This document shows positions 5,410-56,003 of a stretch of DNA of 64,000 nucleotides, piece by piece. Origin of the DNA: Ophelia neglecta (taxonomy: Eukaryota); NCBI GenBank assembly GCA_965285935.1, contig OZ260662.1, positions 37,882,001 through 37,946,000 on the forward strand. Direction: 5' to 3'. The position numbers and the translations under genes were made by a program. Position 1 is the first letter of the stretch; the number at the start of each line of letters is the position of its first letter. A model generated the notes under the pieces. It did no database searches. It was not told the DNA's origin and worked only from the letters and a program-made list of their open reading frames with translations.

Positions 5410-7958
5410 TTACTAACGAATTATCAATTATAAATATAATCAGACCACATAAAGAACCTAAATTTAATACTTATATAAGCACATAGCTGAAATCCTCCTT
5501 GCACAGTTGAGAACGACGGTGTGCACATGACATATTTTTTTTCTCTTACACCCCTTGAATGAATGTAATAAAGGATAAGACTCTTCATTTATGAGTTATA
5601 TTTATATAGTTTTACATCTTTTTAGTTTCTTTTCTCACACAAGTCAGTCACTAATGGAAAATGCTCTCCTCAAATACACTTCTACCTTAAATGCAACTCT
5701 ACCCCCGTTCACCGTGGTTGCCCACGGGTTACTGCTAGTATATTCTAAATGGGGCCAAAGCTTTGATGGGAAATATTGCAGAAACTTATCACTGAACGGC
5801 AGCAACCAATGTGCTAGAAATCCACCTTCAATAAATAGGACCACATTAAAAAGTTTTTAATATCACCTGCTGACATTTAGCCAAAATTGCTGTAAAATTC
5901 TAGGCACACACTTCATTTACCGACGTGAAGAACATCAAAACGCCCATGGGTCCGAGAGGATCCCAATTAGAGTTTTTAGCTTTCAGGTGTGGCGGCAGAC
6001 ATTTCGTTCCGGTGCCAGTGTACGTAGCCTTGGCACTTTTGTCAGGAAAACTGACATCATTTCTGTTGAATTAATCGATGTAGACAAGAAACTAATTCAC
6101 CAGACAGTGGCGACCTTGCAAACCCAATGCTATGTTCGACCCAGTGCGATAGATTTGAACACTAATTATGCATAAACTGCTAAATCTCCGATCGACCACA
6201 CCTAGTTACTAGCATGGAACCTATATCTTTACACATACCCCAACAATTAAAGTGTCAGTCACTGCGGTCCTCCTATATTTGAATAAACACTGAATTTTTT
6301 AACCTTATTACATTCGAAATTTAGGTAACATATATATCAATAGAGGACACAGAACGATTGGCTCATTTTTCAACTAACTAGTTTGCCTTCGACCATGTTG
6401 ACCCACGCAGTACATATACCGACGTCAGAGAGAGGCTTTATGTAGTTCAGAAATACGAAGGAAATTCAACCAATCACAGTACAGGGCGCGTTCTACGTAA
6501 TGAAATGTAGTAGGCTGCCAGCTGTCCAGTGAAATAATTCATGTCCGGTTGTGCCGGAAAAAAAACAAATTTTAACTCCGAACCTAGCACAGCAGGTCCA
6601 GTTATTTGGTTCATGTCTGATTATACCGAATAAATGAGGGAAAAATATAGCGTCATGACATTTCTCCGAACTATTGGGTTCTGTGTCGTTTGGCAACCAA
6701 ACGCGAAAAACCATGCCTTCGTCTTTGCTAACTTAAAGCTCCGCGAAAGTAAACGAGGCTCCGCCTCTGCGCCAAACTAGGAGGTCGACAAAGTTGGTCT
6801 CGTGGAATTAACTCACGCAAATATATAAGCCTATGTGTAGCAATCGCGAAATCTATCCCGTGAATTTTTATTCCAAATTGACGTACCTTAAAAAATCTAG
6901 TCATGGCCAATTAAAAGGTTTCTCTAGGCCGCTTTTTCGGAAAGCCAGCGGCGTTTATTGTCAAATATATACTGGACAGACTAAGGTTTCAACATGTATA
7001 GAACACACATGCAACATTTGAGGGAATAATTTTTATCAAACAGTGTGAGATCGGGGTCAAATGTTAATTTTGAGAAGGTTCATAAGAATAATATATATTT
7101 TATTGTTGATAATGGTACTTGAAGTCCTGCTTATATATTGCTTCATTTAAATTCCTAGGTGCTCACATGCACTTCTTAGTTGTATTATATAATATAAAGT
7201 TGTTGTAGGCCTATATGCAGCACTGGGAAAGTATTTTTATGGTCAACAAAATAGAATACACCAGATTTCAAGCTTACTGAATCAACTCTTAGTCATGCTC
7301 ATTTGACATATGACACATGTAATTCCAAAATCATGGCACTACTCTGTCAGGATTTTAACAATTATTTGGGCGTTGCTGTGGCCACCTCGTATATTCCGAA
7401 TTCACTTAATAATTGTCAAGGCAATGCCCATGGGATTATATAGGAACAATACACCTTTTCCTTTGTATTACGGAAAAACGATTGGTCGAGAGCCGGGCCT
7501 TACGGCATTCCACCAAACACACAATGATCCAGCATGACCGAGGTCAGCAGTGTAGGTGGTTCCGGAGGCATTGCTTCACCCGAACACATCATCAATATGT
7601 TATTTCATCCCGACACTTGGGGCCCCCAATTGTTTGTTAATAAAATGATAGGTAGTGGTCAAATAGCCCCAAGGAAACAATCTGCGTCAATCATTTACAC
7701 CGTGGTGGTGTTTATACGCACACCATCCGGTTTAGTTTCAGTGTTTTGTTATGCCTAAAAGTGTACTTGGCCTATTATAAAGATTTTCAAAAGGCACTGG
7801 GATTCGATTTTAGGTTAAGCATACCTGTAGGCAAATAAAAGTTATGGTATAGAGCATGTCTATAGGGATCTCATATCATATTTAAGCCAATTTTGCCTGC
7901 GAGTTCTCAGCGAATGGTTCCAGCCCAAATCTTTGCTACACATTGCTGTACGCACAAT

Positions 7959-23609: not shown

Positions 23610-24243
23610 CTGCACGTTAGCTCGGCCCCTGCACGTTACCTAAGCCCTTTCACGTTAGCTCGGCCTCTGCACGTTACCTAAGCCCTTTCACGTTAGCTCG
23701 GCCCCTGCACGTTACCTAAGCCCTTTCACGTTAGCTCGGCCTCTGCACGTTAACCTTTCCCCTGCACGTTAGATCCACCACTGGATGTTAGCTCCGTCCC
23801 GGCACGTTACCTAAGTCCCTTCAAGTTAGCTCGGCCCCTGCACGTTAGCTCGGCCCCTTGACGTTATAGTTCCGCCCGTGCACTTTGGTTCCGCCCCTGC
23901 ACGTTACCTCAGCCCCTGCACGTTAGCTCGGCCTCTGCACGATAGCTCTTCCCCCGTACGTTATATCCGCCCCTGCACGTTAGATCCGCCCCTGCACGTT
24001 AGATCCACCCCTTCACTATAGCTCCGCCCCTGCACCTTAGCTTGGCCTCTGCACGCTATCTCTTCCCCGCACGTTACCTCAGCCCCTGCACGATAATTCT
24101 TCCCCCGCACGTTAGATCCGCCCCTGCACGTTAGATCCACCCCTTCACTATAGCTCCGCCCCTGCACCTTAGCTCGGCCTCTGCACGGTATCTCTTCCCC
24201 GCTCGTTACCTCAGCCCCTGCACGTTAGCTCCGCCCCTGCACG
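23610..24243. repeat. ~19-bp minisatellite (consensus CCCCTGCACGTTAGCTC(G/C)G), ~33 units, with higher-order structure
   Basis: Tandem units are seen directly, with a 38-bp dimer early in the array and a ~132-bp seven-unit block duplicated at ~23975 and ~24107. Confidence 0.95.
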
Positions 24244-27200
24244 GTAGTCCCTTCAAGGTGAAAATTTACCAGATATTTGTTCTTGCGTATATCTTCTGCC
24301 CATGCATTTAACATATGGCACACAGCAGGAAGTATTATTTTGGTTCTTTAACTATTAGTGTAGTTACTAGTTACCAACCATGGACCCATCGGAGTTTTTT
24401 TAAGAAAATAAAAACCGCCTTGTAAAAACATACATTGGTTAAAGCGTCATGACTTTCAGAACATGAGCCTATTTGTATATATATTTTGTTAACTAAACAA
24501 GTGGAAAACCATCTAACACTGCCCCACAGTCATCGAATAGTTCTCCCCATATCCTCATTGGTCTAAATATAAAACTAGCAATATGATTGCATATGTATAA
24601 AGTCCCATCACACGAATGCAAATGATATTGAGCTGGCAAAAGAGGGAATCAAGGCATCGGTACTAACTTTAATATTTATTATAACCCTTATACCCTATAG
24701 AAAACAGGAATTCTTCACAGACCTGACCTTCCTTACAACGCAAATTCGGCTTATTGTGTTTTTTGTGTCTAGGCACTGGATACTGTCATGCACGTCATCT
24801 CACCAACGATGAAAGTTGACCTCTGCTGGAGATCCCAGGTTATCAGCAACAACCATCCAGCAAAGCATACCACTAGTGACGTGGTGTCATGAAAGAGCAA
24901 TACTCGGGGGGAGAGGCTGGCATACATCGACTAAACTGGCCTACTTCACAAAAACAAAACACGGCCGGAGAATGAAGTAACATTGAGCCGTTCGACCTTT
25001 TACAGTGCCATTACAAGTGCTAATGACAGTAATTGACACCCAAACATCTTCATGTACGTTCCCATGATAAAGGAAATGAGCATGTTCAGACAGTCATTTC
25101 CACTTAATAATCGTGATATTGAGTGTTTGCAGGGAGCAGTCACGAAACATTGACATTGCGCAGTTTTGTATTCGTTTGTCAGCGAAATTGTAAATCATCT
25201 AAAAAGAACATGAATGATTTTACATTATTCGACAGAAGAGTTCATCTCTTTTAGTCTGACATTTACTGCTTGAGAATGATACTTGTCCGCGAGGCCAAGC
25301 TAGTTTTAGTTTCAGACGACATTAAAGCGCAATCCAACACGCTGGATATATCGCTCAGCCTCATAGAGCCTGCTAGTACCCCCTAGACAGCATCTGGCGG
25401 CTATATCTTTATCAACACTGTCCAGCAACCTGAAAAATCTCTCTAGGGTAAAAGTAAACAAACCAAAGCTCAGAGTGGTTGAAAGACTTATAATCACGCT
25501 TCATTCTGGGATCTGTTCAATCTGGGGCACTTTTTTGATTGGCCTATAAATAGATTGTTACCCATAGATTGGTGCTTTGGACGACCTTACCGCAAGTTAT
25601 TTCGGCCTTATGTGGGTATTTTGTTGATGAAAATTCTTTTCGAGTGCAAAACTACTGAAATTGAACCAAATCGAGGACCACAAGTTGAGCTGTATTACAG
25701 CGTAAACTGCCACGTACTAGCCTACACATTGTCGCACTAGTTTTGGCCATGGCTGACAATGGCATATAACTGAAACGTAAGCCGAACATTAAAAAAATGG
25801 CAAAGTCTAAAAAATATTTCTATATCTAACATTAGTCTCTCAATTTCGAGACCGCGGAAATGATCATAGACTCTCCAAGGGCATAATTAATCTCTGTCCT
25901 ATGCTTACTGACACCTTTGTTTTGTGTTCTGAAAATCATGGAAACTCTTCGCATTTGCAATTTGCATTACACGTTTATTTACTGCTTGGGACCTGGGGAA
26001 TGATGTATTGATGTTTTTGGGGCTGTGTCTGTTGATCCCGTATAGACTAAGACTAATGGATTATTCTAGATAATTGATTTAACTCTGTTTGCCGGGTAAC
26101 AACTCCCGTTTTCCCATCCTAGTGCTGACTCTCATGCGGCTGCTAGCACTCTCGTTCTCCGTCTCCTCCTTCTGCCAATCTTCGTGCTGACCCCCACATA
26201 CCTTTGACTTTCCTGGAATGTATGCCTAATCTGTGAACCACACGTTGTTATACGAACAAATGAGCGCCCATAGGCCTACTATGCCACCGTATTTCTGATA
26301 TACGCCACTGTGGGACAGGGCCATTAAAACCTTTTTTAGCGTATAATATACGCTGTGACGTACTTTGTGTAATATCTTTACCAGAAGGCCATGTTTCATT
26401 TTAACACAATTGTGTTCTTAGTTGGTCGACTTCGCTGACAGCTTTTAACGACACATTCGCAGCTGTAAAAATGAGAATCTCAAGAGGGCAGACATGCTAG
26501 TGTGAACCTATAGATCATTGAGGGAGGTTTTCGTGACTTCTAACTGGCCAATCATATTTCACGTGAAACGTAGAATGTGTTGTGTTTTTAGTTGGGTGGA
26601 CACCAATTGGTATTTTAAAAGCTCAAGTCAATGCCCCCTAGCTTTTTAGTTCTTATGTTACGCGGAAGAGTTCCACAGGTTTTAACTTAAGAAGTTCATT
26701 GGGGTATGGCCGTGATATTCAAACCTCAAAGGAGTTTTTCTTCTACCGTATTGTACATCGTTAAGACTTTGACCACGCATGGCTTATGTGAATCAGTTTC
26801 TTCTGGAACGATTTGGTTTGATGAAGTGTACCAAATCTTTAAAATATGTACTTTTTGCCATTTATTTTACCAAATGGGTTTTTAGGTCTTTTTTTTGTAT
26901 TCTTGATTATGTTACGTGAAAACCTCCTTAACAGTGGCCATTTTATTACCAACCAGTCTCCCATTCTCAGGGACTAGCGCGAGATCCCCATTTTTGTCTT
27001 CTATCTGTTCCACAAGTCTTGAAAATTCTATATTCTGCATAAGAAGTTTTTGACAATTGTATCAACATATCATGAAAATAAGACAAACCACAGGGTGTAT
27101 ATCAAACAAAATTTTAACTTGAAACTTATTGATAAAATTTCAGAAAGTGATAACAAAAAGGTAGACAATTTTGTTTGTATTATAAGGATGATTCCCCTAA

Positions 27201-43200: not shown

Positions 43201-46113
43201 CTGCATAAAAGGCCATTTGGTAATTTCTTCTAGAAGTCGTTTTAGACAATATTTGTTGATTATCTCAAAATTTCAATTCTGCATACTAGTATATGAGATT
43301 TTCATACGACGACGATACACTGCTTGACTGTTGTTCTTGTTCGTGCAAACAAAGCCAACTAAAGAACTAAACAAAATAGTTATATCCTTGCAACTGAAAA
43401 GCTCACGAATAAATAATACCGGTCCGTGTGGCTGTTTCCTGATTGACTGTCTGCCCGTTTTTTTGTAATTGAATTTTTTCCTACTGTATATGACTCTGCG
43501 ATGTGGTAAAAGACATATAGATTTAAATTGTTATCTTGTAAATTGACCATCCTAGTCTTAGAAGATGAATCGTTTATTCGTTGTAGGTTAAATGCGCATA
43601 TTGACCATGTCCTTAAAAAGACTTGACAAATACAAAATAACAAACGAGAAGAACAAAATGAAATTATATTTGTGGCATTACTTTTTAACATCACCAACTC
43701 TTAGAATTCCATCTCCCCTTTGGTAACCCATCTTTCCTTTCAATTTCATGAAAGGCGAGTCCCCTGGAGATTTCAACTTTTTCGTCCATCACGTCAATGC
43801 CTACAGACATATAAAAGTAATTGTTAATTAAACAATTGTTCGTGGATTGCAACATACACATCTTTAATATCTCCTGTAAATGTACTCATTATACCATTAA
43901 GACTTCTTTATCACCAGCGATTTTTTAAAGAAAAGAGAACAGCCATGCAGTCTACAGACACAAACTGAATGATGGTGTATCCGATTTCCATCATACCGCG
44001 TAGAGTGGTAGAGTCTTGTTTACAGCAAACTTCTCTCAAATATTGCTGCATCGCACGATTTATTGTTTTCGAACTTTTTTCAATTTTTTTACGATTCCGT
44101 TTTGTCTGTCGTCTACCCACTGTGGTTTTTACTTCTTCAAAAGATTGGAAGTACTAAATAGAGAGCTTGATCAATAACCCGAAACCTGAAATGTGCAATA
44201 ATTACCTTCTACCTTTTTATATGCTTCAGTATCACTAAAGATACTGGTAATATATCAGTTTAAAGAAGAACCAAGTTATATGACATTCGTTTTGGTTTAT
44301 GATAAATAAAACGGCAATAAAACATCAAAAAGAATGTGTCCCGAGCAAGTGGGAAAAGAGAAAATTGTTCATTTTTGAATAATACAATATCTAAGATTGA
44401 TGACCTATTTTATTTCACATGACTTACAAACACTCTTCATGTTCAACCCTCGATATTAGTGACTTCCTGTCATATTATTACCACCACAGGAGGCCTTGGA
44501 ATCTGTATTAACCTAAACTCAACCAAGACCAAGACAAATAGTTCAATAAAATTGCGGTTGGCCTAGTGCTCTTAGTATTCCATACTTGAGAAGTCCCATA
44601 TGGAGCTAGACAGTTTTATGGTGAAAGCCCCTCATTTTCCAGAGAGATAACTCCGTCGACAATGGTCAATAGAAATAGAGTAATGCTGCCAGATTGTCCT
44701 GGGATTTTCCTCTTGGCTGCCAGGCCAAGCAAAGTAGGGCGAATACATAGATATAATAACCGCTATTGCATTCTGTGATTCAATTTTTGCCTCAATAAAG
44801 ATGGTCTCGATTTTCTGTATAGAAGCTAATGATCGATTGGTAAAGCAGGAATGGTCAGGCCTGATTACATCTGTGTGCTAACCCCCAGAGTAGGAAGGGC
44901 ACTCAGCGCCGCACAGACTGGAACGACTCGGTATTCTATTACACTCAAGACCCCAAAAGTTGAGGCTTTATCGGAAAATGTATCCAAGCATATTTGCGCT
45001 GTTTACACGGTAACGCAGACCGTGCCATTGTCTTATTGCAGGTCGTCATATCACACACTTGTCAGGCTCTTTTTAACATACCTCTCAGGAGAGCTGCTGA
45101 TTCTATATTATCTAAAGTATAAGCCTCAGGGGCTGAACTCAGACCCAATTGCCATTCTCGGGTTTATCGCGTCTAAACGGTAAGGACGATAAAAGAAAAA
45201 GGGCAACAACACCACTCGCGTTCTAGCGACGATAGTAAGTTCGAATAATCTAGAATATATCTTGCATGGATCCAATTTTTTACATTTGAAGACGATAGTA
45301 CGACATACAACTTAGGTAGTACAGGTCCTGTCTGTTATAATAACACGTAGAAAAATGCCAATTATCTAATCTGTCTAAAGCTGGCAATGCAAATAATGTT
45401 ACGCTAAGCCCATCTAAGCAGATGGACTTAGCGTAAATAAAAAAAGGTAACAATAAAGTGACATTTTTTATATCCATGAAATACAAAATGGTAAAGAAAA
45501 TTGATCTGCATCGATCATTGGTGGTATATATAGCAATGCAGGCATTCGTATGTGTTGTATTGTCAAAACACCCAAAGGGGAGTTGTATGAACGAAACATC
45601 AAACACCGCCATAAAATTACTAAAACTATCAGCACTTTTTGCTAATCAAATACGTATTCATTCCATAGAAAATGAAAAGATCATTTTAAATTTCATGAAA
45701 ATCTTTCTAGCAGTCGATAGTTTTTTCGCTTTGCTCAGTAAATATACGAACTGTAAATTTATTCAACATTTATCTCTACTAGATACTGGCCAGACTCCTT
45801 ACAATAAACCTTTTATATAAATTTTAGTTATTGATATAACACAAATTGATTAACAGATTACTTTCAAAATGTTTAAGCAATAATAATAGTAGCATTTATC
45901 AAGTGCTTAGTATCCTCAGTATGCCTAGTTCAAAACCGCCGCTCTCAATAAGATATGACCAAACAATTATGGATACATATAAATCAGTTACTTTATGAAA
46001 AACAGCAATCAAATTTAAAAGAAAGGCCTTATTCAGTTTGAAAACAGGTCCGATTGTAAAACAATAATCACATATATAAAGAAGGCGCATAAAGTTAAGC
46101 ACTATCGGTCTCC

Positions 46114-46530
46114 ATAAGCCACCCTAAACAAATGGGCTTTGAGTTTCTTTTTAAACGATTCAGCAGATCTTACAATAGCCGGTTAGGAATTGCAGAATCT
46201 GGGACCGTATGATCTAAACGTTCGATCATCAGATCTAGATAGTCTTGCTTTTGGTTCATCGAGTACTGTCTTTGACTGAGACCGTAGAGCAAGAGTATGT
46301 TCGTTTCTCTGCAGCAGCTCGGAGATGGCCTGAAATCCATTCTGTGTTTCACTGGGAGAAAGTGTAGGTCATATAAGACCGATGTAATGTGGCCACGTAT
46401 CTTGGTATATGTGACCATTCTAGCAGCGTAGGTTTGAACTTTCTGCAACCGTTTAAGCAAATTGGCAGATATAGCACACAACAGGAAATTACAATTGTCA
46501 ATGCGGAATGTCACAAGTGCATTTACCAAC
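46114..46530 (-). mobile_element. Decayed L2/CR1-group LINE, 3' end of ORF2
   Basis: The minus strand reads VNALVTFRIDNCN...LKRLQKVQTYAARMVT...HITSVLYDLHFLPVKHRMDF, then in another frame GPRFCNS*PAIVRSAESFKKKLKAHLFRVAY. These match L2 ORF2 C-terminal motifs (SRLDYCN, HITPVL..LHWLP, LWNSLP, FK..LKTHLF). Confidence 0.88.
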
Positions 46531-46676
46531 GTGTTTGACCGTGTATTATCCCTGTCTAGATTATTGCAATAGTTTCCCGGCGAGGTATCTATTACCGTAT
46601 TTAAAACGACCGTCAGTATTTCGTAATCGCTTCCTGTTACAGTTTCTGTTAAAAAGGCGGCTTGAAGTTTCAGTTA

Positions 46677-47085
46677 TGCGACGGTTGTGGTTACACAACC
46701 GTGTTTTTCGCAGGGAAACAATAAGCACACATATACAGCATACGTGTTTTCTTAACCATTCTCCTCGTTTCATGTGTCGCGGCTGATTGCACTTCACTGC
46801 GGATGCCGAGGATAGCCTCGACCGCTAACCACACCTGATAGCCCTGAACCAAAAGACACCTGCACCACGTGACACACTCGGCCAATCGCGTGTCAGATCG
46901 CACAGGGAGCCAGTTTCCGGACTATTTTGAACTAAACTATCCTTCTCATCCCGACTTCGACCTGGAAAGACGTCTAGACTTCTCTCTCCGGAAACCTGCC
47001 TTCGATCGACATTTATTCTAATTTACTTACCTTTCGGACCTTTGTTTCAAAATCTATCTTTCGCTTATATCTGATTTTTTCTTTC
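46677..47085 (+). repeat. Split direct repeat A1 (409 bp)
   Basis: Matches 53165-53573 at offset 6488 with no mismatch found by eye. The ORF track gives the same 70-aa antisense ORF in both copies. Confidence 0.97.
46866..46915 (+). promoter_or_regulatory. Candidate Pol II promoter motifs in repeat A (E-box CACGTG 46866, CCAAT 46882, Inr-like CAGTT 46911); duplicated in A2
   Basis: The motifs are seen directly. A promoter role is inferred from their position in the 5' repeat. Confidence 0.35.
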
Positions 47086-47169
47086 TTTCTGGAGAGCCTT
47101 ATTTGTTTGGACAACCTAGATTCACCTCAGTTCAGGTACGTTCATAGTACGCTACTATACCATTTCATA

Positions 47170-47802
47170 ATGGCGAGTACCGGGTTCGTTTTCGGCCACA
47201 GTTTTGTGTCAGGTTTAAACCACCACCTCACTGGGTCTCGGGATGAGTTCAATCCCCAGTCTGTAGCACAGAAACTACGCCTTGATAAGGTCACCAAGAA
47301 TCTTTTCTTGTGTGGCGATCGAGGCGCAAAAGTTTTAGATTCAAATTGGTTACCGCCGGTCCGCCATCTTGAATTTTTCCAACCGGCATTTGCCATATTA
47401 GATATTGGTTCTAATGATCTCGCTTCTGGCGCAGAACCCCTCACTGTAGCTGTTCGGTTAGTAGATTTAGCTAAGGAGCTAAACACGTTGTTTGCCATCA
47501 ATCAGGTCACCATTTGCTCGATTTTACCCAGATCAGCTGGTTTGCCTGCACACTCACCTGAAAGTTTCTTAAACTCTATTTCGGCATGTAACAAACACAT
47601 TTTTCAACTGTGCAGCGTTGAAGCGCATGTACAATTCTGGCCCCATAAAGGTTTTTGGAATCGAGCCATAGATGAATGGTCTCTGGATGGCATTCATCCT
47701 AATTCTGATCTTGGCAGGACTTTATACAAAAAATCCTTGCGAGAAATCATTTTCAAAACTGTGCAGGCACACCACGCTTTCCCCCCCTCACATGAAGCTT
47801 AA
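47170..47802 (+). CDS. SGNH/GDSL-family hydrolase (esterase/lipase-like), element-encoded, about 210 aa
   Basis: Block I FVFGHSFV (catalytic Ser), block II GDRGA, block III DIGSNDL and block V DGIHPN (DxxH) are all present. The likely start is the ATG at 47170 (ataATGG context); the track start at 47107 is TTG. Confidence 0.9.
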   Translation: MASTGFVFGHSFVSGLNHHLTGSRDEFNPQSVAQKLRLDKVTKNLFLCGDRGAKVLDSNWLPPVRHLEFFQPAFAILDIGSNDLASGAEPLTVAVRLVDLAKELNTLFAINQVTICSILPRSAGLPAHSPESFLNSISACNKHIFQLCSVEAHVQFWPHKGFWNRAIDEWSLDGIHPNSDLGRTLYKKSLREIIFKTVQAHHAFPPSHEA

Positions 47803-47941
47803 TCTTAGCAGGCCTACCCCACTGACAACGCGTCGTGGGGAAAGCCCGCTACCCACCTTAACCCCCCCCCCCCCTCTCACACAACCGTCCATGGCCTCCT
47901 GTCTTTACACATAACCTATTTGAATGCACATGTTTCATCTA

Positions 47942-48659
47942 GGAGAGTCGGCTTCGGCCTCCAATTCTTGCTACCATGGGGACCGGCTTCGGCCCCGCGC
48001 TGCCATTGATACCATTTTGTTCTTATTGAACTTACTTGTTGTATTAAATTCCCTTCGAATATATTGACCCCAAACTAATTTTGCTTCCTTCAAAAATTTT
48101 GTTTCACCTGGCTTCTGACTTCCAGACTTTATAACATAAGCCGCCCTTTAAAATTCGAAATTCAATTTATAGCTTTGGGGACCGGCTTCGGCCCCAAGCT
48201 GCAGGTGCTAACCTTCATTTTACTGTTTGCCGGCCACGGCATATGTCACTTATCTCATGTTGGGGACCGGCTTCGGCCCCAACCTGCTTATTACCTTACA
48301 TTTTACAATTTGCCGGCTTCGGCATATGTTGGGACCGGCTTCGGCCCTGCCTGCAGTTGTCAACTTACACTTTACAGTTTGCCGGCTTCGGCATATGTCA
48401 CTTATCTCATGTTGGGGACCGGCTTCGGCCCCAACCTACTGTTGTCACCTTACATTTTACAATTTGCCGGCTTCGGCATATGTTGGGGGACCGGCTTCGG
48501 CCCCTACCTGCAGTTGTAAACTTACATTTTACAGTTTGCCGGCTTCGGCATACGTCACTTACCTCATGTTGGGGACCGGCTTCGGCCCCAACCTGCTGTT
48601 GTTACCTTACATTTTACTATTTGCCGGCTTCGGCATATGTTGGGACCGGCTTCGGCCCC
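47942..48659 (+). repeat. Array of about 15 CCG-GCTT-CGG-type hairpins; tandem units of ~85 and ~70 bp forming ~155-bp higher-order repeats (core 48177-48659)
   Basis: G-type hairpins G(3-5)-A-CCG-GCTT-CGG-C(3-4) at 47978, 48177, 48262, 48331, 48414, 48485, 48571 and 48642. T-type TGCCG-GCTT-CGGCA at 48228 (loop variant), 48311, 48380, 48465, 48537 and 48622. One variant copy at 47942. Confidence 0.95.
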
Positions 48660-48853
48660 ATCATCCCATACTGACCTAAATTTGATCAATTCATTAGTAC
48701 TACTTGGACATTCTCTGATTAACTGTTACTTAACATCCTGTGTCTACTCGACACACCCCTATGTGAAATACTACCCACACGTATTCTAGTTATGGCAGCT
48801 TCGCTGCGCCTTACAATTGTACTATTTTCTGCTGCTCTTTCCTTCTTACAGCC

Positions 48854-50254
48854 ATGCCTAAGGTTACACAAAAATCTTCCCGGCCCTCCGGATCCCTCTC
48901 CATGAAGTTGAAGGCACGAAGGAGATCCATGACCCCCTCCACAACTGAATCACCCCTCAGGAAAACCCGCACAAGACCCATATCAAAACCAGCACTTCCA
49001 ACCCAAAGACAGCAGCCGCTAAGAAAAAGAAGATTGCCAGCACGACTGGTGAATTCCTTTGAAACCCCTTCACTGTTAAGCGAGTCTGACCCACAGCCAA
49101 GCACTTCCACACAACCAGATCAACAACCAGCAGACATCACCCTACACACCATGGCAAATATGCAGCAAAGCATCATTGCTGGCCAACAACTTCTCAGTAG
49201 GCAGATGGAAACACTGATAGCTGTCCTAACCGCAAAACACAGGGAACCAGATACCCCTCAGCAGATCCTCCAAACAGAAAACCTCCAAGCGGGCAGCCCC
49301 GAATCCCCTCAAAATCTAGACACTGTCATTGATGCTCATGCTGCAACCTTAGATCAACAACATCCTTGCCTACCCCAGCCTGATCCTTACCAGACAGCTT
49401 ACCATCCGCAATCACAGCCAGGCTTCATGCAGCAGCCCCAGCCACCGGTCATGCCACCATCACAGCCCACTGACACCAGTCAGAATCAACACTCAGGAAA
49501 TTTCAACGGTGAGTTTCTAAATGTTCCCATAGTCGTTAACAACCAGCGTCCATCCACTTCATCTGGACTCCCTCTTGGAGCATGTGTGGACATGCAGATT
49601 AAGCAAAAAATTTGGGCCCATAAATATGTTGATCTTGCAGATATTCTCTATCCAAATCAGTCTCAATCTTACTCACTCCAATTCTCCGACCCAAGTTCTA
49701 CCCCCCAACTTAACCTCAATCCTCGTAGGAAAAAGCAGCTCACAGAAAATGAATGGAGTTCTGCAATGGACATTTATGTAGCTATATATGTGCAAAAATA
49801 CCCTTCCCACCTCAGTGACCTGCTTACATACTGCCATCACATCAAGCAGTTGATGCGTCGCGGAGCTGAATGGCGATATTATGATCATGAGTTTCGCACC
49901 CAGAGAGAGCACGCAGAAGTGCCATATTCTTGGGCAACTGTGCGACAAGACTTACAGCTAGATGCATATTTCCCCCTCCAACAATCCTCTCGGCCGCCAA
50001 ATTCTTTTCGTGCCCACCAAGAAAATCAAAAGGTCCCATCTGGCTATTGTTTCACCTTCCACCAAAGGGGGGTGCGATGCTTCAACAACCCATGCCCATA
50101 CAAGCACGAATGCCCTAGGTGCTCCAAACGCCACCCCATGTATTCCCAGTGTAGCTCTTTCACACTCACACGCCCTCAACAACCTCAGACCGCCCCCAAA
50201 CTCAAAGTTGCCAACCCCAGTACAATTAGGCGCCCTGGCCAAATATCTAAGTGA
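48854..50254 (+). CDS. gag: Gag-like ORF1 (466 aa) of the YR retrotransposon
   Basis: Basic and Q/P-rich N-terminal half. DIRS/Ngaro Gag-like core (IKQKIWAHKYVDLADIL...W...WRYYDHEFR...W) and a C-terminal Cys/His zinc-finger region CFTFHQRGVRCFNNPCPYKHECPRCSKRH. Confidence 0.9.
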   Translation: MPKVTQKSSRPSGSLSMKLKARRRSMTPSTTESPLRKTRTRPISKPALPTQRQQPLRKRRLPARLVNSFETPSLLSESDPQPSTSTQPDQQPADITLHTMANMQQSIIAGQQLLSRQMETLIAVLTAKHREPDTPQQILQTENLQAGSPESPQNLDTVIDAHAATLDQQHPCLPQPDPYQTAYHPQSQPGFMQQPQPPVMPPSQPTDTSQNQHSGNFNGEFLNVPIVVNNQRPSTSSGLPLGACVDMQIKQKIWAHKYVDLADILYPNQSQSYSLQFSDPSSTPQLNLNPRRKKQLTENEWSSAMDIYVAIYVQKYPSHLSDLLTYCHHIKQLMRRGAEWRYYDHEFRTQREHAEVPYSWATVRQDLQLDAYFPLQQSSRPPNSFRAHQENQKVPSGYCFTFHQRGVRCFNNPCPYKHECPRCSKRHPMYSQCSSFTLTRPQQPQTAPKLKVANPSTIRRPGQISK

Positions 50255-51782
50255 ATACGAACACGGAAAATACCTTCTTGATGGATTCAAATATGGTTTT
50301 GACATTAAATTTTCTGGCCCGGAAACCCCAACCCGATCAAAAAACTCTCAATCTGTATTAAAAAACCCTGAAATAGTACAAAGAAAGATAGAAAAAGAAA
50401 TAGCCCTTGGCAGAATTGCTGGCCCTTTTAAAAATCCACCCTTCCCCAATTTCAAATGTTCTCCATTAGCACTGAGAGAAAAACAATCTCCAGGCACATT
50501 TAGGCTCCTGCATAACCTGTCCTTTCCATATGATGAAACCTCTGTCAATAACAACATCCCTAGCGACTCCACGTCGGTTCAGTATGAAAGTATTAAAAAT
50601 GCAATATCACTCATTCAGCAGTGTTCACCAGGGGCCTTCATGGCAAAAAGTGACATAGCAGATGCTTTTCGGCTCATACCTATAAACCCTAAACAATATC
50701 ACCTAATGGGATTCCAATTTAAAGGGGAGTTCTATTACGACAAATGTCTGCCTATGGGGTGTGCATCATCTTGTAAAATTTTTGAAACTTTTTCAAATGC
50801 CCTGAAATGGATTTTGGCAAATAAATTTGATGTCCAAAACATTGTCAAAATACTTGACGACTTTCTTTTCGTGTCTCCACAACTCTCGACATGCCATAAG
50901 TACCTAAACATATTCCTAGCCCTATGTAAAGAGATTGGGGTCCCCATTGCCCCTCACAAAACACTAGGACCCTCCACTGCAGTAGTATTCATGGGAATAC
51001 ACCTAGACTCGATACAAATGACTGCTTCCCTTCCACCAGATAAACTAGCACGATATACGCAAGACATAAAAGATACTTTGGCACGCAAGAAATTAACTCT
51101 GAGAGAACTCAAATCATTGATAGGGAAATTACAATTTTCAACTTGCATAGTAACCTCAGGCAAACCATTTTTAAGACGCTTGCACGACCTTACCATTGGC
51201 CTTTCGAAACCGTTTTACTTTCTTCGCATCAGTCGAGGGGCAAGACAGGACCTCCAAACCTGGCTCAACTTCCTACAAAACTATAATGGAAAGTCCCTTA
51301 TGACAAAACCCTCTAACCTTGATTCGACCACAATACATCTCTTTTCCGATTCTTCCAAATTAGGCTTTGGAGCCACTTACAAAAACAATTGGATACAAGG
51401 GAAATGGCCCATCTCCTGGCAAACACTAAACATAGCCGTCCTGGAAATTTACCCCATACTTGCGATTATTGTAACATTTGCTAAACACCTAAGTCACTCA
51501 CACATAACATTCCACTGTGACAACCAAGCCGTTGTCGAAGTGATAAAAAAGCAGAGCTCAAAATGCCCCCGCATCATGGCCATCCTACGCCCACTCGTTC
51601 TTACCCTCCTCTTAAATAACATAACATTGCATCCCGTACATATACCAGGTATTGACAATGTTTTATGCGACAAAATTTCTCGATTCCAGGCGGACAAATA
51701 CACTCTTCTACAATATGGGATGAAGTCATCCCCCGTGTCGATCCCAGAGGAAATCCTTCCTCGCAACTACAACTTGGTTTAA
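49962..51782 (+). CDS. pol: Reverse transcriptase + RNase H (ORF2, 606 aa), overlapping gag and YR
   Basis: RT motifs FRLLHNLS, MAKSDIADAFRLIP, LPMGCASS and ILDDF. RNase H motifs FSDSS, IAVLEIYP, HCDNQAVV and HIPGIDNVLCDKISR. The true start is uncertain because conserved sequence begins near LPTPV (~50210). Confidence 0.96.
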   Translation: MHISPSNNPLGRQILFVPTKKIKRSHLAIVSPSTKGGCDASTTHAHTSTNALGAPNATPCIPSVALSHSHALNNLRPPPNSKLPTPVQLGALAKYLSEYEHGKYLLDGFKYGFDIKFSGPETPTRSKNSQSVLKNPEIVQRKIEKEIALGRIAGPFKNPPFPNFKCSPLALREKQSPGTFRLLHNLSFPYDETSVNNNIPSDSTSVQYESIKNAISLIQQCSPGAFMAKSDIADAFRLIPINPKQYHLMGFQFKGEFYYDKCLPMGCASSCKIFETFSNALKWILANKFDVQNIVKILDDFLFVSPQLSTCHKYLNIFLALCKEIGVPIAPHKTLGPSTAVVFMGIHLDSIQMTASLPPDKLARYTQDIKDTLARKKLTLRELKSLIGKLQFSTCIVTSGKPFLRRLHDLTIGLSKPFYFLRISRGARQDLQTWLNFLQNYNGKSLMTKPSNLDSTTIHLFSDSSKLGFGATYKNNWIQGKWPISWQTLNIAVLEIYPILAIIVTFAKHLSHSHITFHCDNQAVVEVIKKQSSKCPRIMAILRPLVLTLLLNNITLHPVHIPGIDNVLCDKISRFQADKYTLLQYGMKSSPVSIPEEILPRNYNLV

Positions 51783-52678
51783 ACAAACTTTTAAATGCCT
51801 CGATGGCCACAAGCACAAGCCGCGTTTACATTAGGCAATGGCAAGCCCTTTTATCTTTCATTACCCATGAATTACAACTGCCACCCACCCTCCCCGTGTC
51901 AGATTATACCTTAGCTTTATTTGTTACTCACCTCTTCCAACAGGGCCTTCGCCAGTCAACTATTCGAACATATATGTCGGCTATCTCCTTCGTTCACACC
52001 ATTAAAAAATTCCCAGACCCCACTAGTAGTGTTGTTGTTCGAAAAGCAATTGACGGGATCAAATCCCTGGAAAACTACGACTATGATAGCCACCAACTCC
52101 CAATCACAAAGTCAATATTGGAAAGACTTATCGATTCCATCCCTTTCTGCACAATGTCCCCTTATGATAGAACCATGTATAAAGCACTCTTTCTTATTAT
52201 GTACTATGCCTGCATGAGAGCATCCGAAGCTGTCCTGACCCAAACCCCTCAACACATGTTGCAACTTAATCAGGTTCAACCAAAAGGCAAAGACTTTCTC
52301 ATAACTTTTCGGTCTTTTAAACACTCGAAAAATCGCACAGCAACAGTTTTGTTACAAGCCTCAACTGAAAATCTATACTGCCCGTCTTATGCACTTCGTA
52401 ACTACCTCCTAAAAAGAGGACAACAAGACGGTGCGCTGTTCATAAACCAACATAAAATGCCCATTACAAGAAACACCTTTGCCATTTTCCTAAAACAATG
52501 CATGACTATGTCTGGAATTAATCCCGCACAATACAACACACATGGTTTCCGCATAGGCAGAGCCACACAAATGTCCTTACAAAATGAGAACGAACACACA
52601 ATAAAATCTGTCGGCCGATGGAGCAGTGACGCCTTCAAAACTTACATCAGACCCGCACATGTGCCTCTCCCACCCTAG
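51665..52678 (+). CDS. Tyrosine recombinase (ORF3, 337 aa)
   Basis: Catalytic set R (CMRASE), K (FKHSK), HxxR (HGFRIG), W (GRWSS) and Y (KTYIRP). The N-terminal core-binding region reads STIRTYMSAISFVH. Confidence 0.96.
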   Translation: MRQNFSIPGGQIHSSTIWDEVIPRVDPRGNPSSQLQLGLNKLLNASMATSTSRVYIRQWQALLSFITHELQLPPTLPVSDYTLALFVTHLFQQGLRQSTIRTYMSAISFVHTIKKFPDPTSSVVVRKAIDGIKSLENYDYDSHQLPITKSILERLIDSIPFCTMSPYDRTMYKALFLIMYYACMRASEAVLTQTPQHMLQLNQVQPKGKDFLITFRSFKHSKNRTATVLLQASTENLYCPSYALRNYLLKRGQQDGALFINQHKMPITRNTFAIFLKQCMTMSGINPAQYNTHGFRIGRATQMSLQNENEHTIKSVGRWSSDAFKTYIRPAHVPLPP

Positions 52679-52850
52679 AGCGCCCCGCACCTCAGCTAGT
52701 TTAATTGGGGTGACCAGCGTATGCTGCCCCCAGGCAGGGTTCTCTCCCGGGAAGACCAGCGTATGCTGCTCCCAACACATCCCCTTTATTCGCTCTATAT
52801 TTGTGGGATCCCGCTCAGTGTGCTACAAACGCCTGCACCCCTCGCTTATG

Positions 52851-53164
52851 GCGACCTTGCAGGGTATCCCACATTGTACATATTGATGCCTACTCTGTAT
52901 ATATGTTCATGTCGCTTCGTTAGTCATTATTGTACATACGTTAATAGTTATACTTAACTTTAACTAAGTCATATTTTGTAATCATATTTCGGTGTATGTA
53001 ATGACCAAATTATTCTACTATTGTTATTCGATTTCAACAACGTGTTTTCTAATTTCCTGTGATTATAATATTCAGAACTCTTTACCAATTCATAATTATC
53101 AAAATATTTAATAAATTTAATTAAACTCCTATGTGCCTTGTGTTATTGCTTTCCTAAAGAAAAA
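52851..53164 (+). repeat. Split direct repeat B1 (314 bp)
   Basis: Runs GCGACCTTGCAGGG...TTCCTAAAGAAAAA, matches 53624-53937 at offset 773, and directly abuts A2. Confidence 0.96.
53110..53152 (+). terminator. Candidate polyadenylation signal in repeat B (AATAAA 53110-53115 plus a GU-rich downstream element); copy at 53883-53888
   Basis: AATAAA is followed ~16 nt later by TGTGCCTTGTGTTATTGCTTT. Confidence 0.55.
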
Positions 53165-53573
53165 TGCGACGGTTGTGGTTACACAACCGTGTTTTTCGCA
53201 GGGAAACAATAAGCACACATATACAGCATACGTGTTTTCTTAACCATTCTCCTCGTTTCATGTGTCGCGGCTGATTGCACTTCACTGCGGATGCCGAGGA
53301 TAGCCTCGACCGCTAACCACACCTGATAGCCCTGAACCAAAAGACACCTGCACCACGTGACACACTCGGCCAATCGCGTGTCAGATCGCACAGGGAGCCA
53401 GTTTCCGGACTATTTTGAACTAAACTATCCTTCTCATCCCGACTTCGACCTGGAAAGACGTCTAGACTTCTCTCTCCGGAAACCTGCCTTCGATCGACAT
53501 TTATTCTAATTTACTTACCTTTCGGACCTTTGTTTCAAAATCTATCTTTCGCTTATATCTGATTTTTTCTTTC
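53165..53573 (+). repeat. Split direct repeat A2
   Basis: Copy of A1. Confidence 0.97.
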
Positions 53574-53623
53574 CCTCCCATCCCACCCGATTGTACATTT
53601 TGATGCCTACTCTGTATATATGT

Positions 53624-53937
53624 GCGACCTTGCAGGGTATCCCACATTGTACATATTGATGCCTACTCTGTATATATGTTCATGTCGCTTCGTTAGTCAT
53701 TATTGTACATACGTTAATAGTTATACTTAACTTTAACTAAGTCATATTTTGTAATCATATTTCGGTGTATGTAATGACCAAATTATTCTACTATTGTTAT
53801 TCGATTTCAACAACGTGTTTTCTAATTTCCTGTGATTATAATATTCAGAACTCTTTACCAATTCATAATTATCAAAATATTTAATAAATTTAATTAAACT
53901 CCTATGTGCCTTGTGTTATTGCTTTCCTAAAGAAAAA
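53624..53937 (+). repeat. Split direct repeat B2 (element 3' end)
   Basis: Copy of B1. Identity stops after AAGAAAAA at 53937. Confidence 0.96.
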
Positions 53938-56003
53938 CCATATCCCTATAAACTCATCCCCTCACTCTATACAAGTTATCAATACCAATATTTAATGCAG
54001 ATAAATGGATATTCCAGTAATTGAATTTTCAGATATGTGCACATATACGCAGTCCTATATATGGTTCGGTATTGATTCCCCTGATTGTATTGTGTCAATT
54101 AAAAACTAATCATTTCAAGTGCAATGGATTTGCATTCGTTTTTGCAGGATTTTTTTTAGAAACATTCTTGGCCTGTTGCGAGATCTTTGTTTGAGGTTTC
54201 CTATCGACTGAAGATAATATAAACTCATAAATGTTGCTCCCATCGGTAGTCATTCATCATTTAAAAACTATCTGACGTCCAACAGATGACTCCCCATACT
54301 TCCTCTATCAGATAACCTCCGATCGATCAACAGTGCCTACTAAGTTAGGAAAAACGAGAGATAAAACTTCCGGTTCATCTTATCATGTTTCATTGTTAAG
54401 GTTGAAAATGAGTGTGAGCCTCATTGAAAGGCGGGCGACGAAAGGTGTAGTACATCGTCAGTGCAATTTAGTGAGTATCTCATTTAGGAACACCAGAAAC
54501 ACAGTATTTTTTGTTTACCTGGAAAGGATAAAATACCCTGTTATTCTATAACTATGACAGTGACTTATGCAATACTAGTTTCCTTGTAACAGTCTAGGGT
54601 CGCACCATCAGGTGACTGGTGTTGGTGGTTGTGGATGGGTGTGTGGGTGTGATGGTGGTTATGCTAAAATATGACTTTGTTTAAATAATCAGAAACATGC
54701 TCTTTTGTGCCACTATTGTTTTCGACGTTCTTTCTTTTACTAACTGTGGAATTTTTTTTCTACAAAATGTGACTTTAGCTATGTGGACCCTCCTCTCCAC
54801 CCTTCCAATTATCAACATGAAAGGATTCGCCATCGTTGAAGTGGCATCATTTGTAACAAAGAATTTTCAAGTCTGGTTGTGTTGTGCCCGTGAAAGGTTA
54901 ATTGGCTTGTTAAACGAAACAGTTAAAAAAAATGATCCCCTTTTCAAAGGCCAGTAGAAGACGCATTGACCCTAAACAAATCGGTATCATTATATATAAG
55001 CTCAAGGCAATAAGAAGTTAAAGGTGTTAAGTGTCGACCAGCAAGATATTATTGTGCTGCAACTCCTCAAAATACAGCAAAATCATATCTGAACAAGTCT
55101 GCCAGCTCAAAATAAAAAGAATCTCCACACTTGATAAATTAACAGAAATTTCCCGATAGAGTTTGAAAGGAGATAACTGAATTGACGGTGAAACATCCCT
55201 GATGACCCATAAAAGCTCCCCTCGGGTGGGTAAATGCCTTCCAATTTGAGCATAAATATGGTTCTGCTTTGAATGACAGATGTGTCTCGGGAACGGCATG
55301 AAGTTGTTAACACACCCTGAAATAATGTGCCTCGTGAGACAGATTTGACATGTCCAATGGTGCCAAATGGAATTGGCTAGGAAACAAAAAAAGACTAGAA
55401 AATAATGATTATATTCTCCACACAATATATATTCGATCAGCTGTTATGTATTACTGTGTGTTCTAAAGAAAATTCTTGATATTTACAATAAACGGTTAAA
55501 ATCAATGTTAGCAATGTCCAATCTCTGATGCTCAATTGTAACACACTAACCACACATTTGTTACAATTTCTAGCTTTTTCGATACTGCCTTCATAAATCG
55601 TTCACTTAACATAGTGAGACTGTATTGCACGATTGAAGAGGTACAATTCAATCTCCATCCTTAGTTTGCGTGGACTTTTCACTTCCTTATCTGGCCTTAT
55701 CTTTTTTTTTTCGATCTATTCATCCGTAGTTTTAAGAGAAAGCTTGGTTGTCCTAGGACACAAGCCATCTCTTTCCTACGTCAACCACTGTTTCGTTTGT
55801 TTGGTGATACACTGGATCAATTTAATAAACTATTATTGAGGTTTGAGTTGTCTAGTTTCCCCGAGTATCCCTTCCCGCCTTTTTGTCGACTGTTCTTACC
55901 TCCGTTTACTCAACAAATACAGGTAACTCTTCAAAATAGTTGATATGCGTTGACAACAAATGAAGTATTTGGTATATTGTCGTTTCCTTAATCGTATATC
56001 AAT

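Follow-up and report, generated by a model that had tools for sequence, protein, structure and literature searches.

The stretch of DNA considered here (the window) comprises 64,000 nucleotides (nt) of Ophelia neglecta contig OZ260662.1 (assembly GCA_965285935.1, positions 37,882,001 to 37,946,000 of the forward strand), is free of N stretches, and contains at 46676-53937 one complete Ngaro-type retrotransposon, that is, a tyrosine-recombinase element of DIRS order. The element encodes, in this order and on the plus strand throughout, a hydrolase and Gag, followed by a reverse transcriptase (RT) and a tyrosine recombinase, and every open reading frame (ORF) of at least 170 amino acids (aa) in the window is part of it. 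Between the hydrolase stop codon and the gag ATG lies a 1051-nt spacer, the sole long non-coding stretch within the element, and it is this spacer that houses an array of short hairpins at 47942-48659. As argued below from sequence comparison, the array on balance probably consists of plus-strand RNA hairpins kept by selection, and similar though unrelated arrays occupy the same position in several related families.

The element has split direct repeats in the arrangement A1 ... B1-A2-B2, with A1 equal to A2 and B1 to B2. In a self-BLAST comparison A1 (46676-47085) proved 100% identical to A2 (53164-53573), and B1 (52847-53164) proved 99.7% identical to B2 (53619-53937), the terminal block running from 52847 to 53937. 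RT and tyrosine recombinase are encoded in place of a DDE integrase: the RT ORF, with a presumed RNase H, spans 49962-51782 (PF00078, E=1.9e-11), and the recombinase ORF spans 51665-52678 (PF00589, E=5.7e-11). The SGNH/GDSL-type hydrolase ORF occupies 47107-47802, with its first ATG at 47170, and its match to Pfam family PF13472 (E=2.4e-7) scores 31.9 bits, slightly below the 32.9-bit cut-off. The gag ORF (48854-50254, 466 aa) encodes an Arg/Lys-rich N-terminus (48854-49050) and a C-terminal zinc finger, whose Cys/His motif region lies at 50100-50200; a Pfam search with Gag gave no match even at E up to 10. The 100% identity of A1 and A2 and the intact ORFs point to a recent insertion.

The first-pass annotation of this DNA, made from the letters alone, had described about 15 hairpins of two alternating types inside the element, between hydrolase and gag. 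Both the placement and the number are correct, exactly 15 hairpin cores being counted. Eight are of a G-type, with the layout G3-5-A-CCG-GCTT-CGG-C3-4 in which the A is bulged (anchors at 47982, 48181, 48266, 48334, 48418, 48490, 48575 and 48645), six are of a T-type, TGCCG-GCTT-CGGCA, and one is a variant. The 10-nt core CCGGCTTCGG is common to the G-type and T-type hairpins and, with at most one mismatch, occurs 14 times in the window, always within the array, against a chance expectation of 0.76. The variant, GGAG-A-GUCG-GCUU-CGGC-CUCC at 47942-47962, and an outlying G-type hairpin at 47978-47996 sit about 180 nt upstream of the main array, beyond an AT-rich stretch of about 175 nt without hairpins (47997-48170). 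The main tandem array, at 48171-48659, holds seven G-type hairpins (cores at 48177-48195, 48262-48280, 48331-48347, 48414-48432, 48485-48504, 48571-48589 and 48642-48659) and six T-type hairpins (48228-48241, 48311-48324, 48380-48393, 48465-48478, 48537-48550 and 48622-48635). Its period in Tandem Repeats Finder (TRF) is 157 base pairs (bp), repeated 3.1 times at 90% identity, and sub-units of about 85 and 70 bp alternate within it; over the whole array, successive G-type hairpins are spaced by 199, 85, 67, 85, 72, 85 and 70. The 15 hairpins are duplicated descendants of one two-hairpin unit of about 78 bp rather than 15 independent events, and their number alone is therefore no evidence for selection.

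All 15 hairpins have a loop of 4 nt. Predicted folding energies are -14.1 kcal/mol for the G-type and -7.4 for the T-type, with -9.6 for the variant at 47942 and -17.0 for the copy at 48172-48200. An alternative register closing on a cUUCGg tetraloop, which the earlier annotation had entertained for the G-type core, does not hold up: it offers only 3 bp in the G-type (2 bp in the T-type), and both the minimum free energy (MFE) structure and the centroid from RNAfold are always CCG-GCUU-CGG. The array region as a whole folds better than shuffles on both strands (MFE, plus z=-4.4, minus z=-3.9), as expected from its palindromic arms, and whole-region MFE gives no strand discrimination. The spacers between hairpins are rich in U and poor in G (T 44%, C 21%, A 23%, G 11%). 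The element's plus strand is itself strongly G-poor (46001-54000, GC skew about -0.25, G 17%), with skew near 0 in the flanks.

The three plus frames of the main array (48171-48659) contain 0, 1 and 1 stop codons, as compared with 8-13 in the minus frames, and ORFs of 114-150 aa result; this near absence of plus-frame stops probably results incidentally from the repeat unit being G-poor. A coding role for the array was rejected, given that the 157-bp period is not divisible by 3, that there is no family match, and that the spacers of relatives are stop-rich. A search of Rfam 15 with 46000-54500 found no match on either strand at E up to 1, known transport elements included.

Conservation within the window array follows the hairpins. 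When the six full units are aligned, 4 of 33 hairpin columns are variable as compared with 22 of 39 spacer columns (Fisher p=1.6e-4); the linkers have diverged by 10-22% and the hairpins are almost invariant. In a second alignment, of the nine G-type and variant copies (alignment A1), 88.6% of stem cells are paired, versus 78.7% in shuffles (reached in 0 of 500), and registers slid out of place give at most 56%. Both-side changes occur at 4 pairs in this alignment (22/500 shuffles), and the covariation score is 0.324 (1/500 shuffles). Changes that keep pairing include A-U for G-C, a U.G wobble and an extra pair in the variant at 47942, GGG facing CCC at 48331, and AGCUU/AAGCU at 48171-48200; the last two had been singled out before, as had a change at 48228 that affects only the loop (GCCA), and all of these examples stand. 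This covariation is modest and, with seven distinct rows, is rated as suggestive only. Within these small samples the stem-loops are stable and their pairing appears to be evolutionarily maintained, as in a Psi-type packaging signal, and the window array departs from the absence of constraint within monomers that characterizes hypervariable repeats of untranslated regions (UTRs).

Related families allow the array to be placed in a wider context. The window RT has 523 homologues, hundreds of them at 44-58% identity, and eight families were compared: the window element plus L128, L129, L130-133, L134, L135, L136-138 and L158-161, the relatives being taken from three assemblies of the European Nucleotide Archive (ENA). 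In RT these relatives are 49-58% identical to the window element, and all seven families fetched have split direct repeats. Tandem arrays of short hairpins lie in the pre-gag spacer of six of the eight families, the window included, with periods of 42-179 bp and motif sequences that are mutually unrelated. The array of L128 combines GGACA-N3-TGTCC and GGATC-N4-GATCC in 3-4 units, and that of L134 repeats TGACC-ACTT-GGTCA six times with a period of 42. In L136 the motifs are GTGGTG-N10-CACCAC and ATGTGTG-N9-17-CACACAT (period 83, 4.3 copies), in L130-133 the motif is CTGCC-N8-21-GGCAG (period 179, 2.5 copies), and in L158-161 about 20 hairpins are built on GGCA-N8-TGCC, GACAT..ATGTC and GGTAT..ATACC.

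Searches beyond these families were largely negative. Exact-protein look-ups of the window Gag and recombinase gave no match, a homology search with Gag gave one distant match, and an RT search of viral contigs gave none. Scans for the hairpin 18-mer in viral and prokaryotic contigs, and for the two-hairpin pattern in metagenome and viral contigs, returned only chance single matches in GC-rich bacterial sequence, and CCGGCTTCGG was found in none of the related loci.

Though their sequences differ, several of the arrays share an excess of hairpin potential. Measured against repeat units that were shuffled and then re-tandemised, local hairpin energy gives z values of -4.2 for the window, -5.5 for L128, -4.2 for L136, -3.1 for L134, -1.3 for L130 and -1.0 for L158. 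Sixteen unrelated tandem repeats from the same sequences, with periods of 40-200 bp, have z around -0.7, distinct from the six pre-gag arrays by a Mann-Whitney test (p=0.003). One of the controls is an unrelated GC-rich repeat in the window itself, at 23618-24247 (period 132, 4.7 copies, GC 0.61), where hairpin potential is z=+0.25. Recurrent perfect hairpins containing GC number 10, 7, 7, 3, 0, 6, 4 and 0 in the eight pre-gag spacers; the same count in 120 control windows of 1 kb has a mean of 0.26, with three or more in only 3 windows.

The clearest covariation among the arrays is that of L136. In its alignment (A2) 88.9% of cells are paired, as against at most 61% in slid registers, both-side changes occur at six pairs (1/500 shuffles), and the covariation score is 0.338 (1/500). 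Single pairs run through series such as G-C, G.U, A-U and U-A, U.G, C-G. In the L128 array one change is compensatory (GGACA/TGTCC to TGACA/TGTCA), and two G.U wobbles are also seen.

These results support the original suggestion of a selected, multivalent single-strand element rather than a neutral satellite: stems are conserved over spacers, they covary in the window and in L136, non-homologous arrays recur in six of eight families, and control tandem repeats lack such hairpins. Of the functions first listed, a processed array of small RNAs is unlikely, with stems of only 5-10 bp and no Rfam match; a miRNA-like array was rejected because the stems are too short.

A number of observations weigh against selected RNA structure. 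Within the window, the earlier claim that variation keeps pairing holds on balance, as the proportion of paired stem cells indicates, and fails in particular copies: G-type tracts are unbalanced at 48485 (GGGGG/CCCC) and 48642 (GGG/CCCC), and the outer GTT/AAC stem is whole only in the sub-units of about 70 bp that open at 48263, 48415 and 48572. It is broken in those of about 85 bp opening at 48331 and 48487, as well as in the last copy, at 48642. Alignment A1 owes some of its apparent covariation to shifts in the run length of G and C tracts, which inflate the count of double changes. Comparisons within an array rest on 6-9 rows of paralogous units whose kinship the shuffles ignore, hairpin definitions were partly set after inspection of the data, and the focal family is represented by a single copy, the window's own. 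Among the relatives, two of the eight families are without an array: L129 has none (and is also without a hydrolase), and L135 has only loosely recurring hairpins, with a score of 0. The hairpins of L130 and L158 are weak (z about -1), with loops and flanks conserved as much as stems, a pattern more suggestive of a sequence motif than of structure. Stem changes in L134 are disruptive rather than compensatory, and loops and flanks are again as conserved as stems. For L130, L134 and L158 a sequence motif is a plausible alternative reading. Finally, the arrays of L158-161 (around 6210-6530) are polymorphic in length by blocks of about 100 bp, with duplications in L158 and L161 and shorter forms in L159 and L160, which implies that arrays grow and shrink quickly.

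The earlier idea that the array is carried only on unspliced RNA finds indirect backing in splice-site-like motifs on either side of the hydrolase ORF and spacer. A splice-donor-like site on the plus strand (47134-47142, CAG followed by GTACGT) precedes the hydrolase ATG by 33 nt and agrees with 6 of the 7 consensus positions of a donor. On the same strand a pyrimidine tract and CAG resembling a splice acceptor (48839-48851) end 2 nt before the gag ATG. L128, L130 and L135, like the window, have a donor-like site at the hydrolase ATG or shortly ahead of it. That of L134 is found about 140 nt upstream of the hydrolase match, and L136, which has no hydrolase, has one 60 nt after A1. When an acceptor is strictly defined as YAG with at least 10 pyrimidines out of 14, such a site is found no more than 12 nt upstream of the gag ATG in five of the six families with a clear gag start, the relatives being L128, L130, L135 and L136, where chance would give 0.035 per 12-nt window. 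Given that relatives share the acceptor, the array probably falls within an intron removed to make a spliced gag mRNA, and the hydrolase ORF and array together probably lie in a leader intron of about 1.7 kb of the gag-pol mRNA.

The favoured explanation, which we put forward tentatively and somewhat below an even chance, is that the element's own Gag binds the array, a multivalent platform that marks the unspliced genomic RNA much as Psi does downstream of a splice donor. Splicing would join a leader exon, with its end near 47136, to the acceptor 2 nt before the gag ATG, and the hairpins would then be present only on full-length, unspliced RNA. That RNA would serve as hydrolase mRNA and genome, the spliced RNA as gag-pol mRNA. 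Fifteen hairpins on U-rich, G-poor linkers could offer many binding sites to Gag, with its zinc finger and Arg-rich N-terminus, and Gag binding would tag the unspliced RNA so that it is captured and packaged into the replication particle. Splicing, RNA rather than DNA as the active form, Gag as the partner and packaging as the function are all inferred here. The Gag proteins themselves have features that would suit such a role: the C-terminal motif GYC-x9-C-x4-C-x3-H-x-C-x2-C-x3-H is invariant in all eight families, and the N-termini are Arg-rich in all eight, the N-terminal half being otherwise too divergent to align. Two further points tell against this scheme. If gag is translated only from the spliced RNA, cis-preference is of no help and the logic of packaging depends wholly on the putative recognition of hairpins by Gag; and Gag itself is without a Pfam match.

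One alternative, which we consider unlikely, is that the arrays act at the DNA level, where double-stranded palindromic half-sites would be bound by dimeric factors and serve gag-pol transcription as an internal promoter, enhancer or insulator. Tandem motif arrays with regulatory activity are indeed known upstream of gag in long terminal repeat (LTR) retrotransposons, in the 5'UTRs of ZAM, Idefix and gypsy (PMC1885662). The window array, with palindromic arms set apart by a fixed 4-nt loop in 15 of 15 hairpins, could be of this kind, as could the arrays of L130, L134 and L158-161, where loops and flanks are conserved like the arms, and conservation of hairpins over spacers is predicted equally well by DNA sites. 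Single-sided stem changes in alignments A1 and A2 run in the direction expected of plus-strand RNA, with 12 giving G.U on the plus strand and 5 giving A.C, but the asymmetry falls short of significance (p=0.07), which weakens the case for RNA and is to the advantage of DNA sites. What speaks against DNA sites is, first, the occurrence of compensatory double changes and G.U intermediates in the window and L136 and, second, the variable distance between conserved arms in L136 (9-17 nt), L130 (8-21 nt) and also L135, which fits hairpins better than dimer-binding sites of fixed spacing. Moreover, L128, L134, L136 and L158 come from one assembly yet carry unrelated motifs, a state of affairs unexpected for conserved host factors and one that points to an element-encoded, co-evolving partner; and the motif is not found in the A/B terminal repeats, where a promoter would be expected. 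An array of sites for a host factor should have a motif shared within one host and half-sites at fixed spacing; this combination was not found, the window array itself being fixed at 4 nt. Taken together, the compensatory changes, the variable loop length and the differing motifs within one assembly favour single-strand hairpins over double-stranded dimer sites.

We give the same low probability to a second alternative, in which the arrays are non-functional hypervariable repeats, by-products of replication that arise through slippage, or through RT pausing and template switching at stable hairpins, in the only long non-coding spacer. Tandem repeats are common in the UTRs of Tat/Ogre elements, where monomer sequence and length vary between families, and they have been ascribed to abnormal strand transfer (PMC7004042). 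The present arrays behave similarly in that monomers differ among the six families, without homology, and copy number differs between copies in L158-161. The lack of an array in L129 and of tandem order in L135 would also be accommodated, as would the location, the spacer being the only place where repeats are tolerable. The conservation of hairpin columns far above spacers (p=1.6e-4) and the covariation of stems count against the proposal. The 16 control tandem repeats likewise show no excess of hairpins, control windows scoring three or more are rare (3/120), and the array is identical in the four copies of L130-133.

A third possibility, a little less likely still, accepts a selected plus-strand RNA element and gives it another function: nuclear export of intron-containing RNA, damping of splicing so as to balance spliced and unspliced forms, or control of translation between the hydrolase ORF and gag. 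It shares all of the RNA-structure evidence with the Gag-platform explanation, and the position of the array, within a putative intron and between two ORFs, would suit it well; retroelement RNAs that retain introns generally require control of their export and splicing (PMC5035971). Factors of the host that act in export or splicing, however, would be expected to see similar motifs within one host, where those observed differ completely, and there is no similarity to any Rfam family, known transport elements included.

That the hairpins act in single-stranded complementary DNA (cDNA), for second-strand priming or as accessory recombinase sites, is highly improbable: tyrosine recombinases do bind inverted repeats, and every hairpin can form on the complementary strand too (z=-3.9), but stem changes favour plus-strand G.U, which is a C.A mismatch on minus-strand cDNA (12 vs 5), the motif is missing from the A/B repeat junctions where recombination sites would be expected, and L130-133 retain the array though a recombinase ORF is undetectable. 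The replication of DIRS-type elements such as DIRS-1 through a linear single-stranded cDNA (PMC7192593) provides the setting in which such hairpins could form.

Extending the Gag-platform explanation to the whole group is more doubtful than the explanation itself. It would have the hydrolase-first Ngaro clade use intronic hairpin arrays, fast in turnover and specific to each family, as 'self' tags for the cognate Gag. If so, co-evolution of hairpin and Gag would keep co-resident families from packaging each other's RNA, and the tags would be a natural counterpart of the engineered MS2/PP7 hairpin arrays. Family-specific Gag tags would be a clean natural setting in which to study how RNA signals and capsid proteins co-evolve when elements compete within one genome, and they would show how multivalency can take the place of a complex Psi fold. 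To our knowledge, almost nothing has been established about the cis-acting signals by which tyrosine-recombinase retrotransposons choose, prime and package their RNA, and a recurrent, structurally constrained hairpin array whose position is fixed gives a concrete handle for mutational tests, as does the hydrolase-first order with its probable leader intron. Even if the arrays are only by-product repeats, they document that repeat birth in Ngaro elements is tied to hairpins.

The hydrolase-first order is itself a recurrent feature. A hydrolase or its remnants lie upstream of gag in five related families for which DNA was at hand, and homologous ORFs are found at the same position in L128, L134, L135 and L158. 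The P0004 and P0009 loci, read like P0016 from gene tables only, also have an intact hydrolase ORF upstream of gag. This brings the order to at least six related families (L128, L134, L135, L158-161, P0004 and P0009), and in each hydrolase-first relative the hydrolase is followed by a spacer of 0.8-1.3 kb.

Some of the loci have peculiarities of their own. The four copies L130-L133 (ENA ERZ26052449) have identical RT sequences, only frame-broken remnants of a hydrolase and no detectable recombinase, the region after RT being replaced by tandem repeats; this family may be mobilised in trans. Palindromic tandem repeats lie just outside two of the elements: TTGGCCCAACA, repeated 3.5 times at 4979-5016 in L128, within about 70 nt upstream of A1, and TTGGTTACGAACCAGT, repeated 2.7 times at 6110-6152 in L129, within about 50 nt upstream of A1. 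They may be a target-site feature or a coincidence. The CpG observed/expected ratio of the window is 0.79, indicating that the host shows little CpG depletion.

We know of no cis-acting RNA signals described for tyrosine-recombinase retrotransposons, and comparisons have to be drawn both within the Ngaro group and outside it. Full-text literature searches, with the original Ngaro descriptions outside their scope, found no Ngaro or DIRS element described as having hairpin or tandem-repeat arrays, and both the array and the hydrolase-first order appear to be undescribed in the searchable literature. Published Ngaro elements, of the form A1-[gag, RT/RH, YR, sometimes hydrolase]-B1A2B2 (RH, RNase H; YR, tyrosine recombinase), resemble the window element in their split direct repeats, gag, RT, recombinase and SGNH hydrolase (PMC9210276). 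The difference lies in gene order: in the amphibian Ngaro families of Xenopus the hydrolase ORF comes after the recombinase (PMC9210276), whereas the window element departs from this pattern and, together with at least six related families, puts the hydrolase before gag, with a spacer of 0.8-1.3 kb between the two.

Among signals of known function, the closest parallel is the Psi of retroviruses and LTR retrotransposons, which is also made up of structured stem-loops that lie upstream of gag, in the 5' portion of the genomic RNA, next to the gene for a zinc-finger Gag (PMC5035971). Psi is located downstream of the major splice donor, and the window array may likewise be left out of spliced mRNA. 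Where Psi is a unique multi-helix domain, the window has a tandem, multivalent set of near-identical small hairpins, and a packaging role for these is putative; the relation to splicing is also reversed with respect to retroviruses, the putative spliced product here being the gag-pol mRNA itself. The repeats of Tat/Ogre elements are alike in being short, tandem, non-coding arrays that are unrelated between families and variable in copy number (PMC7004042). They lie in the 3'UTR, however, and are regarded as unconstrained, whereas the hairpin stems of the present arrays are conserved and covary. The 5'UTRs of gypsy, ZAM and Idefix and the 5' monomers of mouse L1 are likewise repeated units, situated between gag and the 5' terminal repeat (PMC1885662). 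Those are double-stranded DNA sites for host proteins, with motifs shared within a host, whereas in the Ngaro arrays described here the motifs are family-specific, the spacing between arms varies in relatives, and changes preserve complementarity.

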